Below are positions 1-47,424 of a DNA stretch of 64,000 bases, piece after piece (position 1 is the first letter of the stretch; each line of letters begins with the position of its first letter). The notes beneath the pieces were generated by a model, which had not been told where the DNA came from, ran no database searches, and saw only the letters and a program-made list of their open reading frames with translations. This DNA is from Octopus sinensis. Lineage: Eukaryota. Both the position numbers and the translations under genes were made by a program. The stretch lies in contig NC_043000.1 in NCBI RefSeq assembly GCF_006345805.1, forward strand, positions 66,340,001 to 66,404,000, given 5' to 3'.

Positions 1-906
1 TGGAGTCCTTCTGGCCTCAAGCTTAAAGTCACTGATGATTAGTCTATGCTGAGGGATACATTCTTCACCCGGGAGGGACTTTGTATTCAAGAGCAACCCT
101 GCATCCCGTTGTCTGGTGAGGATGAAGTCTATTTGGCTAGCGGAGTCTCCTGACTGATAAGTTATAAGGTGGCAGACTGGCTTCTTGAAGTTAGTGTTGC
201 AGATTGAAAGGTTACATGCATCACAGAATTCCAGTAGTCTAGTTCCCTCATCGTTTCTGGTGCCAATACCATATCCACCATGTACCCCAGTGAAGATACC
301 CGATTCCCGCCCAACATGCCCGTTAAAATCTCCACCTACAAAGATGAGGTCCTTGTTACTAGTCTTTGAAGTAGCCTGCAGAAGGGTATCATAAAAGTTG
401 TCCTTCTGATCATTTGGTAGTCCCGCTTGTGGGGCATAGGCTGAGATAATCATAGCTGTGCCACTCTGTAGGACCAACCTGAGCTTAAGCACTCTATCAC
501 AAACCCTGACAACCTCTATGACCTTATCCACCCATTCCTCCGCAAGGAGAATGCCTACACCCCCTACACCTTCCGCGTTACCTTGCCAGTAGAGTTTGTA
601 TCTAAGTGCCTTGCCCGTGAGGACCCTAGCCGAAGCATCTCTCCATCTTACCTCTTGTATGCAGCATACATCAACCTGTCTTCTCTCTAGCATCTCTACA
701 ATCTCACTAGACTTGCCTGTCAATGTACCAACATTGATAGTGCCAACTCTGAAAACTGGGAAGGAGATGTGGGGGGGACAGGGGGGATTCGGCGCCTGAG
801 AAGAGGAGGGTTGTAGTGGTGGTGATAGTTTTCGTGGTATTTTTCTTTTGATCTCTCTTCCAACCTGACCACGCCGTGGGCAGGAGCTGGTGTTAGCAGT
901 GGACAT
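1..906 (-). CDS. LINE ORF N-terminus, apurinic-type endonuclease domain (302 codons, no stop before window edge)
   Basis: Hand translation: MSTANTSSCPRRG...VFRVGTINVGTLTGKSSEIVEMLERRQVDVCCIQEVRW...GVGILL...ISAYAPQAG...GGDFNGHVG...QIDFIL...PQHRLIISDF; in-frame TAA directly upstream (912-910). Confidence 0.92.
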   Translation of the reverse strand, partial: MSTANTSSCPRRGQVGREIKRKIPRKLSPPLQPSSSQAPNPPCPPHISFPVFRVGTINVGTLTGKSSEIVEMLERRQVDVCCIQEVRWRDASARVLTGKALRYKLYWQGNAEGVGGVGILLAEEWVDKVIEVVRVCDRVLKLRLVLQSGTAMIISAYAPQAGLPNDQKDNFYDTLLQATSKTSNKDLIFVGGDFNGHVGRESGIFTGVHGGYGIGTRNDEGTRLLEFCDACNLSICNTNFKKPVCHLITYQSGDSASQIDFILTRQRDAGLLLNTKSLPGEECIPQHRLIISDFKLEARRTP

Positions 907-1449
907 TCGTTATCGTCACTGAGTAACGTAATTAGGTAGAGGAAAGAAATACAGATATTCTAGAGTTGAGTTGGGGAGGGGGGTCCAGTTGAGGCGGGTA
1001 ATATAGGGGAGCAACCAGTGGGGAAGGTTGGGGTAAGGAGGAACGATGGCAGGAAGGGTTGGTGTAGGTTCCTAAGAAATAAAAACGTAGGATATTACGA
1101 GGCGGGAGGGTACTAAAGGGGATGGTCGGATTGACGAGGCGGGAGGGTACTAAAAGGGGATGGTCGGATTGAGGCAGTGTCAGGAGGAAGCGTAAGATCG
1201 GTGGGCAGTTGATGAGCTATGGCGCTAGCAGCTTGTCTTAAGCATATGAGGAGAAGTGGTAGTGGGAGGAGGAGGAGGGAGTAGGGCGTACCCAGTGTAG
1301 ATGAGTAAGGTGTATCCGGTGTAGATAGAGAGAACGGGGTATACTGGTATTGGTGGTGGGGGGGGGTGAGAACAGTGTTCAACGGTATTGGTGGTGGGGG
1401 TGAGAACAGTGTTCAACGGTATTGGTGGTGGGGGTGGGGGGGCGGGCGC

Positions 1450-3027
1450 ACCGCCAATGACTGAAAGATGGGAAAAAGATGGGATTACCGGCTTGAGGCA
1501 GCCTGCGGTTAAATATGTAGAGAGAGAGATAGAAGATAAATCAAGTTATGGCGAAGGCTTGAAAGTATCCTAAAAAGGTTAAATTTTCGTAACAGTGTAT
1601 GAAAAAACGTATTAACAACGAATAAAAAATATAGTAAGATAATTTTTTAAGAACTTGCTGCGGTCATCGAGCGGGAGTTGAAATTGAAGAAGAGTAGTTT
1701 GAACTGGGAATTTAAATTGCAGAATCGTAATAGTAATAGTAATGGCGGTTTTCAAGTTTTAGCATATGAAGAAGAAGAGGAGGAAAAAGAAGACCGCCAA
1801 TGACTGAAAGATGGGAAAAAGATGGGATTACGGCTTGAGGCAGCCTGCGTTAAATATTGTAGAGAGAGAGATAGACGAGATAAATCAAGTTATGGCGAAG
1901 GCTTGAAAGTATCCTAAAAAGGTTAAATTTTCGTAACAGTGTATGAATAAACGTATTAACAACGAATAAAAAATATAGTAAGATAAATTTTTTAAGAACT
2001 TGCTGCGGTCATCGCGGGAGTTGAAATTGAAGAAGAAGTAGTTGAACTGGGAATTTAAATTGCAGAATCGTAATAGTAATAGTAATGGCGGTTTTCAAGT
2101 TTTAGCATATGAAGAAGAAGAGGAGGAAAAAGAAGACCGCCAATGACTGAAAGATGGAAAAAGATGGGATTACGGCTTGAGGCAGCCTGCGGTTAAATAT
2201 TGTAGAGAGAGAGATAGGAAGATAAATCAAGTTAATGGCGAAGGCTTGAAAGTATCCTAAAAAAGGTTAAATTTTCGTAACAGTGTATGAATAAACGTAT
2301 TAACAACGAATAAAAAATATAGTAAGATAAATTTTTTAAGAACTTGCTGCGGCATCGAGCGGGAGTTTCAATTGAAGAAGAAAGTAGTTGAACTGGGAAT
2401 TTAAATTGCAGAATCGTAATAGTAATAGTAATGGCGGTTTTCAAGTTTTAGCATATGAAGAAGAAGAGGAGGAAAAAGAAGACCGCCAATGACTGAAAGA
2501 TTGGAAAAAGTGGGATTACGGCTTGAGGCAGCCTGCGGTTAAATATTGTAGAGAGAGAGATAGGAAGATAAATCAAGTTATGGCGAAGGCTTGAAAGTAT
2601 CCTAAAAAGGGTAAATTTTCGTAACAGTGTGAATAAACGTATTAACACAACGAATAAAAAATATAGTAAGATAAATTTTTTAAGAACTTGCTGCGGTCAT
2701 CGAGCGGGAGTTGAAATTGAAGAAGAAGTAGTTGAACTGGGAATTTAAATTGCAGAATCGTAATAGTAATAGTAATGGCGGTTTTCAAGTTTTAGCATAT
2801 GAAGAAGAAGAGGAGGAAAAAGAAGACCGCCAATGACTGAAAGATGGGAAAAAGATGGGATTACGGCTTGAGGCAGCCTGCGTTAAATATTGTAGAGAGA
2901 GAGATAGGAAGATAAATCAAGTTATGGCGAAGGCTTGAAAGTATCCTAAAAAAGGTTAAATTTTCGTAACAGTGTATGAATAAACGTATTAACAACGAAT
3001 AAAAAATATAGTAAGATAAATTTTTTA
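1450..3027. repeat. Tandem array of ~343-346 bp units, 4 full + 1 partial
   Basis: accgccaatgactgaaag recurs at 1450, 1793, 2136, 2482 and 2826; units are near-identical, differing mostly by 1-nt indels. Confidence 0.97.
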
Positions 3028-4483
3028 TGTGAGGAATATTATTCTATAGAACTAACATTTGAATTCTGTTATTCTTTTATTCAGTCACTGAACTGTGATC
3101 ATTCAAGGGCATTGCCTTTATTAGCTTTAACTGGTTGTTCATTTTACAGTCTAGTTCAAATTTTATCAATCTCTGTTTATTGAATGGCTAAATTAATTTT
3201 TAATTAAAAAGAAATATACAATTTGATGCATTGTTTTGCACTGATACACATGTAAACGGTATCTATCTCTATGCCAAAAATAACCTGACAACAAAATTGA
3301 CTGGGTTTTTTTTTCTATTATATGTGCCAGATGATGGAGGACCTCAATAGTTGGCAAGATGCTGTGAGATCCATCTACTCCATCGTAGCATAGAAAAAGT
3401 GATGTAAAAATGATGTGTGTGTGTGTGAGACAGGCTTTCACATTAGTTAACCCAAGACTCCTGTTGAAAACACTTGGCCAAAGTGCTTGATAGTGGGATT
3501 AAACCTGGTTGTGAACTTGTTAAACTACACAGTAATGAGTAAATTTCCTTTAGATTGCCATGAAATTTCTTGGCATACTGGAATAAAGTGAAACCGTTGA
3601 CTGTTCAGTGAAGAATTTATTTAGTTTCCTTCTATCTTGTCATAGCTTAACTGGACTGAATTTACATGTGTTCTTAAAGGTGATTTTACTTTTTTATTTT
3701 TAGCAAATGAGGTTATGAGACAATGCTTTATTTGTATTTCAGTCTTGGTCTATTTCAGCCATTGCATACACTACATAACTTATATCTTGTGACCCTTTTA
3801 AGAAACAATATTTTCATAAGAAACCAAAGATGTTTCTTGTATCAGGTCATATCAGTAGTGGCGGGAGCTAGGGAGCTGTTACTTCAGTTGGATTCTGGTC
3901 TGTGTGCAAAAAACGGATTATGTAATGTGTATAATAAATGATGCTGCATGTTTTGGAAACACGGGTGTTGAATGCAGAAGATCTGAGATTAGAGAGTCAA
4001 TTATAATTTCTTAGATGTGTAGTGTTAACTCTGATAAAAAGTGGAGCATAAGTGAGCTAAGAGTGTGGCTGAGTATAAAAGGTATTATTAGTTGATACAT
4101 GTAGGAGACATGACTGCTGGAATGGATATCATGCAGGTATATGAATGAATGCTAATTGAAAACATCTTTTCTGTAGGTACTCATATCAGCAGAACATGAG
4201 GTATTGGTGTTGGACCTCACAATAAAAATTAAAAAAGAAAAACTGGTGATATTCTATTTTACAGACCTGTTCATGCTGTAGAATCATAGCAGAATGAACA
4301 GACATTATATATGATAATTAATGATACTTATTACTAACACTATTGATTCATTAAGATCCCTGATTTTCTTTATTCCATTTTAAAGTCACCTTATCCTTTT
4401 ACATCTCTTCAAAATTTGTGATTGACTTAAGTATTCATATTCTTTTCTTTTTGTTTCTAAAATAATTCACTATTATTTTGCAG

Positions 4484-44772
<40,289 letters not shown>

Positions 44773-46762: not shown

Positions 46763-46796
<34 letters not shown>

Positions 46797-46797
<1 letters not shown>

Positions 46798-47072
46798 TGT
46801 TTTTATATAAAATCATCAATATAATTATCACTCAGCTATTGGCAATTGTCTGTTATATCAAATAAGTCAAATAATTTTCAGAAGTGAGTGATAATTATAT
46901 TAATGATCATTTAGTATTTTTCTTCGTAATATTGCTTTATATCAGTGAGTTATTTTTTTCTAACATTTACTTAGTTTATTTTTCCCTTCTGCAATGTAAT
47001 TTAATATGAATTGGGTGTTCAGTAATTTCATTGCAAGATGTTACAATTGAATTTGGACCAATTCTGTTGTTG

Positions 47073-47109
<37 letters not shown>

Positions 47110-47384
47110 TGTTTTTATATAAAATCATCAATATAATTATCACTCAGCTATTGGCAATTGTCTGTTATATCAAATAAGTCAAATAATTTTCAGAAGTGAG
47201 TGATAATTATATTAATGATCATTTAGTATTTTTCTTCGTAATATTGCTTTATATCAGTGAGTTATTTTTTTCTAACATTTACTTAGTTTATTTTTCCCTT
47301 CTGCAATGTAATTTAATATGAATTGGGTGTTCAGTAATTTCATTGCAAGATGTTACAATTGAATTTGGACCAATTCTGTTGTTG

Positions 47385-47386
<2 letters not shown>
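46797..47386. repeat. Direct tandem duplication of a 278-bp segment (period 312) separated and flanked by (TA)n
   Basis: 46797-47074 and 47109-47386 look identical by eye; TA tracts before, between and after. Confidence 0.95.

Positions 47387-47424
<38 letters not shown>

Follow-up and report, generated by a model that had tools for sequence, protein, structure and literature searches.

A CpG-rich array of 344-bp monomers upstream of a young RTE-like LINE in Octopus sinensis as a candidate repeated promoter

A 64-kb stretch of the Octopus sinensis genome (contig NC_043000.1 of assembly GCF_006345805.1, positions 66,340,001 to 66,404,000; hereafter the window) contains at one edge the 5′ part of an RTE-like long interspersed nuclear element (LINE). 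The element lies on the minus strand, and in its own orientation a tandem array of 344-bp units is followed by a unique leader and by the start of a single open reading frame (ORF). On balance we read the array as the distal 5′ untranslated region (UTR) of a young RTE-like LINE, where it would act as a repeated promoter. This reading builds on the CpG-island character of the array and on the precedent of mouse L1 (PMC9022269, PMC6454616). The broader statement that the array belongs to the element, either as a promoter or in a non-promoter role, is likely, because array and element share a rare strand skew and CpG richness, the array shows no decay at its edge, it is short (1.6 kb, as are LINE 5′ arrays) and the nearest relative of the element, L001, offers a parallel.

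Tandem Repeats Finder (TRF) detects a 344-bp period in 4.6 copies at positions 1450–3027 (96% matches, 2% indels, score 2935). Self-BLAST reproduces this repeat structure and shows that monomer, leader and ORF occur nowhere else in the 64-kb window. Together with an alignment of the units, these analyses define an array of a 344/345-bp unit in which all units stand head-to-tail on the minus strand, oriented as the ORF. The alignment delimits M1, the outermost unit (2683–3027), M2 (2338–2682), M3 (1995–2337), M4 (1652–1994) and M5 (1450–1651), the innermost unit and a partial one of 202 bp. M1 starts with TAAAAAATTT right after the flank, which runs up to it with CCTCACA; in the minus-strand reading the array begins at 3027 with TAAAAAATTTATC, and the flank before it is unrelated. 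M5 ends with TCAGTCATTGGCGGT at the junction with the leader, which abuts the array without a spacer. The leader, or tether (907–1449, minus strand), is a unique sequence of 543 bp with 53% GC whose sense strand is very C-rich. TRF finds three small tandem duplications within it, all given here on the minus strand: 38 bp × 2 at 1097–1172, 24 bp × 2 at 1279–1326 and, beside the array junction, 34 bp × 2.4 at 1354–1436. The ORF begins with an ATG at 906–904 that is preceded by in-frame stops, and its 5′ part (1–906, minus strand) continues for 302 codons without a stop, as far as the window reaches. A sequence-only reading made before this analysis had described the same succession of array, leader and ORF, and our TRF and translation results agree with it on the ~344-bp units, on the GC-rich tether of ~540 bp (here 543 bp with 53% GC) and on the ATG that follows (here at 906).

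That reading had also listed a partial unit followed by four full monomers and had called the outermost unit truncated. The array can be written in two equivalent registers, with X standing for 202 bp and Y for 142 bp: X(YX)4-leader places the partial unit outside, and (XY)4X-leader places it inside. In the outer-partial register the lone 202-bp piece corresponds to 3027–2826. The order of one partial and four full units holds when the array is phased from the leader junction. Whether the truncated unit is the outermost or the innermost one is purely a convention of register, and the single copy fits both equally.

The 302-residue N-terminal part of the ORF product matches the Pfam families PF03372 (Exo_endo_phos, residues 56–201) and PF14529 (Exo_endo_phos_2, residues 153–288), and an apurinic/apyrimidinic (AP)-type endonuclease domain is encoded at about 43–741 on the minus strand. 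In a search of a protein collection that does not include the window's own ORFs, it matches 314 proteins at E ≤ 1e-10. The best match, P0002, is an ORF of assembly GCA_024449705.1 with 67% amino acid identity, and the search found no protein relative closer than this. The next matches are proteins called "craniofacial development protein 2-like" from Octopus bimaculoides (62%) and from O. sinensis (60% by BLASTP, 58% by tblastn), and lower-ranked matches are proteins of the same kind from nematodes, Lepidoptera and many plants. We take this name to be a marker of BovB/RTE-type endonucleases. An ORF and Pfam search of the 2.1 kb that precede the ATG reveals no coding ORF and no family match, and hence no ORF1. 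A single ORF that opens with an endonuclease, with no ORF1 upstream of it, fits an RTE element, and RTE LINEs are documented in Octopus (PMC9115989). The element thus appears to be RTE-like, as had been proposed from its sequence and as the 58–67% matches to CFDP2-like proteins and to P0002 suggest. The clade call uses endonuclease similarity alone, since the reverse transcriptase and the 3′ end fall outside the window. The element is not a member of the L1 clade: it has no ORF1, its monomers have no L1 homology and its endonuclease is of the RTE/CFDP2-like kind. It is an analogue of mouse L1Md only.

The array and the leader form a CpG island inside a CpG-depleted genome. The observed/expected (o/e) ratio of CpG is 1.42 in the array (56 CpGs), 0.93 in the leader and 0.34 in the ORF; the consensus unit carries about 12 CpGs, and the array has 35% GC. 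Across the rest of the window the ratio is 0.23, in the flank adjoining the array it is 0.15–0.17, and the highest value among 297 other segments of 1578 bp is 0.59. At positions 3028–64000 the CpG ratio of 0.23 goes with 33% GC and with a normal GpC ratio of 1.09. A deficit of CpG while GpC is normal implies that the host germline is heavily methylated at CpG, and against this background the array and the leader stand out. The earlier remark that the units keep their CpGs in an AT-rich genome is therefore borne out by the ratio of 1.42 in the array compared to 0.23 in the rest of the window. Mammalian L1 elements likewise have a CpG-rich 5′ UTR before a CpG-poor ORF (PMC5381506).

Strand asymmetry extends over the same region. 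The GC skew of the plus strand is 0.43 at 751–906, which holds the first 52 codons, 0.618 in the leader and 0.433 in the array, and it is 0.13 beyond 3027. The array value lies above those of all 594 background segments of equal length, none of the other 1578-bp segments exceeds 0.30, and 2.5% of 344-bp segments reach a skew of 0.43. The purine content of the plus strand is 65–69% in both leader and array. A shared skew of the same sign that ends at 3027 suggests that the ORF start, the leader and the array make up one compositional domain, the outer edge of which is the edge of the array.

The nearest relative, L001, from which P0002 derives, is contig JAANSU014725947.1 of assembly GCA_024449705.1. 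Its positions 1–845 are a sense-oriented tandem array of at least 3.1 units, with a higher-order period of 270–276 bp and a CpG o/e of 1.75. Identity is 86% between neighbouring units and 84% between units two apart. The units are built of TCGA-rich sub-repeats of 33 bp, and the first position of the contig already falls within the array. A unique leader of 183 bp follows, with the ATG at 1029, and the ORF has a CpG o/e of 0.53. L001 thus resembles the O. sinensis element in having an RTE-like endonuclease ORF, a unique leader and a CpG-rich, long-period sense array upstream. It differs in the period of 270–276 bp, in units that are 84–86% alike, in a sense strand that is G-rich, not C-rich, and in the leader of 183 bp. 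Outside the ORF we found no sequence similarity between L001 and the window. The same three-part layout in an unrelated sequence speaks for an array that is part of the element.

The copy in the window appears to be recent, because the units have diverged little, no CpG>TpG change has occurred and the ORF is intact. Pairs of units differ by 0–3% substitutions and by 2–9 short indels, mostly of 1–2 bp; M1 and M3 differ by 0 substitutions, and none of the differences at the 56 CpGs is CpG>TpG. Homopolymers account for about half of the indels. Individual units also have changes of their own: M2 carries a TG insertion, an AT deletion and 4 substitutions, and M4 has TT-C>TCGT. The 906-bp ORF beside the array is free of frameshifts, so the unit indels are not simply a uniform read error. 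Indels in the array next to a clean ORF can be explained either by polishing that failed only in the tandem repeat or by real differences between the units.

Every unit contains a cluster of short motifs at consensus positions 170–201. In M5 the cluster occupies 1451–1482 on the minus strand and ends exactly at the leader junction. On the sense strand it consists of two copies of CCATCTT, which resembles the YY1 core, together with TCAGTC, similar to an initiator, ATTGG, an inverted CCAAT, and GGCGG. The sequence CCCATCTTT occurs 7 times in the window, in all cases within the array and on the sense strand. In mouse, the L1 Tf and Gf monomers have a YY1 site, GCCATCTT, close to the start site (PMC6454616). 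The motif cluster may be a hint of a promoter signal. A motif scan found no TATA box.

Several other origins and roles of the array and leader were considered and dropped. Derivation of the array from the leader or UTR was abandoned since the best local alignment of monomer and leader, with a score of 24, is matched by 42 of 300 dinucleotide shuffles. A coding role for array or leader is not apparent: the longest stop-free stretches are 82–106 residues of low complexity with no Pfam match, and the array has no ORF above 82 residues. A structured RNA or an origin from a short interspersed nuclear element (SINE) was rejected as well, as no Rfam family reaches its gathering threshold (only sub-threshold sR52 noise appears, with E = 0.2–0.3) and no tRNA was found.

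If the array is a repeated promoter, the mechanism would follow the logic of the monomer and tether 5′ UTR of mouse L1. Each unit would carry binding sites along with a start site for RNA polymerase II. RNA initiated in one of the upstream units would include the units downstream of it, so that a daughter copy would keep one or more full promoter units despite reverse transcription that ends at the 5′ end of the RNA or before it. On this reading the array would also be found in other copies of the family, with a variable number of units, transcription would start inside the units and the promoter would be maintained in this way.

A number of observations weigh against an element-borne promoter array. 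The insignificant alignment between monomer and leader gives no sign that the array has grown out of the leader. The copy begins at unit position 1 and the initiator-like motif sits at position 188, which leaves the outer end unexplained by this motif. A single copy was seen, and the 64-kb window covers neither its 3′ end nor its target-site duplication. The evidence from L001 is a single 2.7-kb short-read contig, and a search with the pseudo-ORF of its array returned no further copies. In L004–L006, three copies of one family with 46–47% amino acid identity, the common sequence extends only ~460 bp upstream of the ATG and includes no array, and L009–L011 (45–49%) have no array either; its absence from these more distant relatives indicates that an array is not a general RTE feature. 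Finally, at 543 bp the leader is by itself as long as a normal RTE 5′ UTR, which measures ~460 bp in L004–L006 and ~600 nt in RTE-2_OV (PMC9115989). The leader could therefore be the whole UTR, and this keeps alive the explanation that the LINE was inserted into an array.

That explanation is one form of a copy-specific adjacency, in which the array would not be heritable in the family; we regard it as rather unlikely. A full-length LINE with its real 5′ end at ~1449 would have inserted into a pre-existing short array, either a local minisatellite or one borne by a mobile element. Alternatively, the two would have been joined in a one-off event, either a 5′ transduction through read-through from a start further upstream or a switch of template by the reverse transcriptase to the RNA of a repeat. 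In the insertion version, monomer sequence starting with CTTCTTTTTCC would resume beyond the 3′ end of the LINE. A leader of ordinary RTE length (PMC9115989; L004–L006), the lack of monomer–leader homology and the single copy seen all fit such an event, and an insertion that cuts an array yields a non-integer copy number, for which the inner partial unit is an equally valid reading. Helentron-type elements with short, dispersed satellite-like arrays are common in the Pacific oyster, a mollusc (PMC7492417), and L1 is known to transduce flanking DNA including satellite monomers (PMC6947457). However, adjacency of this kind requires a coincidence, as other arrays with a period above 100 bp cover ~1% of the window. 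A chance array would also have to share the same-sign skew (~2.5% of segments, times one half) and to have a CpG richness unmatched in the window, and the coincidence would be needed twice, with the nearest relative L001 having acquired the same layout independently. Moreover, the edge unit M1 is not degenerate, being free of substitutions relative to M3, and the outer flank contains no Helitron-like hairpin or terminus.

An array that belongs to the element and yet is not a promoter would have arisen neutrally, by slippage or unequal exchange, or would have a role at the RNA level in translation control, protein binding or small-RNA targeting; to us this seems improbable. The three small duplications in the leader and the 33-bp sub-repeats of L001 suggest that the 5′ UTRs of this lineage are prone to repeats, which is in keeping with such an origin, as are the absence of a TATA box and the position of the initiator-like motif away from the 5′ end of the copy. 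Many mammalian L1 5′ UTRs also contain 2–3 duplicated motifs of unknown function (PMC5381506). On the other hand, a CpG o/e of 1.4 compared to 0.34 in the ORF suggests shielding from germline methylation or selection on CpG sites, both typical of promoters (PMC5381506), and in mouse L1, the one well-studied analogue, the monomers are the promoter (PMC9022269, PMC6454616). We give very little weight to the idea that a long-read assembler inflated 1–2 real units to 4.6, or that the array expanded after insertion at this locus alone. The predominance of 1–2-bp indels among the unit differences, about half of them in homopolymers, would suit an artefact, and a 100% identical repeat of 312 bp × 2.1 at 46765–47416 hints at assembly quirks. 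Against this, M2 and M4 carry their own combinations of substitutions and indels, and a 906-bp ORF without frameshifts makes a raw error rate of 1–2% unlikely here. The repeat at 46765–47416 starts in a (TA)n run and reflects either a duplication of very recent date or an error of the assembly.

How LINEs retain their promoters although each new copy is at risk of losing its 5′ end is an old question, to which the monomer array of mouse L1 is the textbook answer. The mouse L1Md families A, Tf, Gf and F and the rat L1 share with the O. sinensis element a small number of CpG-rich monomers that stand head-to-tail in sense orientation, with a partial unit at one end, followed by a tether and the first ORF (PMC5381506, PMC6454616, PMC9022269). 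The YY1-core-like CCATCTT present in each unit is a further likeness to mouse L1Md. The elements differ in clade, as the O. sinensis element has a single RTE-like ORF that starts with the endonuclease, no ORF1 and no sequence homology to L1Md. They also differ in dimensions: the unit of 344 bp compares with about 200 bp in mouse and about 650 bp in rat, and the tether of 543 bp with about 250 bp. In mouse L1Md the number of monomers has been shown to vary among copies, truncation to fall at a common point and the monomers to act as promoters, whereas the element described here was seen in one copy. The sequence-only reading of a mouse-L1-like architecture is accordingly supported in part, by the layout, the CpG island, the shared skew and L001, while truncation of the outermost unit, being a matter of register, drops out of the comparison. 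It is possible, and we put this forward tentatively, that the RTE-like lineage comprising the family in the window and its 67% relative evolved a mouse-L1-like 5′ UTR independently of L1, with the monomer sequence turning over fully from one sister family to the other and the architecture being kept. In the literature that we searched there is no report of 5′ monomers in RTE elements, which is weak evidence that the design is undescribed there.

Other systems resemble parts of this arrangement. The L1 elements of horse, elephant, opossum and hyrax have tandem duplications of 70–100-bp motifs in a CpG-rich 5′ UTR (PMC5381506), but these comprise only 2–3 short motifs without a long-monomer array and tether, and the elements belong to the L1 clade. 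In Dictyostelium the non-LTR (long terminal repeat) element TRE5-A is headed by a discrete module of ~200 bp, the A-module, which supplies its promoter (PMC3159450). There, however, it is a single module of an AB-ORF1/ORF2-BC structure, in a two-ORF amoebozoan element that targets tRNA genes (PMC3159450). RTE-2_OV and L004–L006 are RTE LINEs with a related endonuclease and a unique 5′ UTR of ~0.46–0.6 kb, near the length of the leader (PMC9115989); in these a monomer array is neither reported nor seen. For RTE-2_OV of O. vulgaris, 5′ and 3′ UTRs of about 600 nt are reported (PMC9115989). The Helentron-derived arrays of the Pacific oyster are likewise short, dispersed monomer arrays in a mollusc genome (PMC7492417), but they sit between Helentron arms and not at a LINE 5′ end, and neither arms nor hairpins are seen in the window.

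Searches for other copies extended beyond the window. Exact 22–25-mers of the monomer and the leader have no match in the collections of metagenome, prokaryotic-genome and viral contigs, and a protein-guided scan of viral contigs yielded no copy. Within the 64 kb, the absence of a free-standing monomer is a weak indication that monomers occur only together with the LINE. The Octopus copies L002 and L003 and the short contigs L012 and L013 were rejected as members of the same family, because their nucleotide identity is only ~70% and confined to the ORF. The two Octopus loci are old, decayed copies, one with nothing upstream and the other, L003, with an ambiguous array. The latter is a CpG-rich 63-bp × 4.4 array at L003:9051–9333 (O. 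sinensis), ~670 bp upstream of the decayed RTE-like ORF, and may be a 5′ UTR array or unrelated. In L006 (ENA sample ERZ26222911) a 33-bp unit is repeated 49 times with 98% identity at 193–1811, ~4 kb upstream of the RTE copy; a 567-residue "gene" has been called across this repeat, which lies outside the part common to the three L004–L006 copies. The window itself also contains a CR1-like LINE, recognized by its RT (reverse transcriptase) domain, as two frameshifted fragments (22795–25214 and 27578–29172) that lie ~4 kb apart in the same orientation with 81–84% mutual identity. The best database relatives of these fragments, all from ENA contigs, are 58% identical overall or 84% identical over half of the query.

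If the array were a chance neighbour of the LINE, the finding would be ordinary. The origin and maintenance of monomer arrays in mouse L1 "remains unclear" (PMC6454616), and an independent case from another clade and phylum would establish the design as convergent and provide a second system, with much longer units, for the study of transcription starts, the ends of new copies and the addition of units. If confirmed, the arrangement would be a known design reached by convergence in an RTE-like lineage of invertebrates, in a variant marked by the length of its unit and of its tether. Should its recurrence in a sister family with unrelated sequence hold, the layout itself, not a particular sequence, would be under selection. 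Monomeric, self-maintaining promoters would then, if the promoter reading is true, be a recurrent answer to 5′ truncation across LINE clades and phyla.

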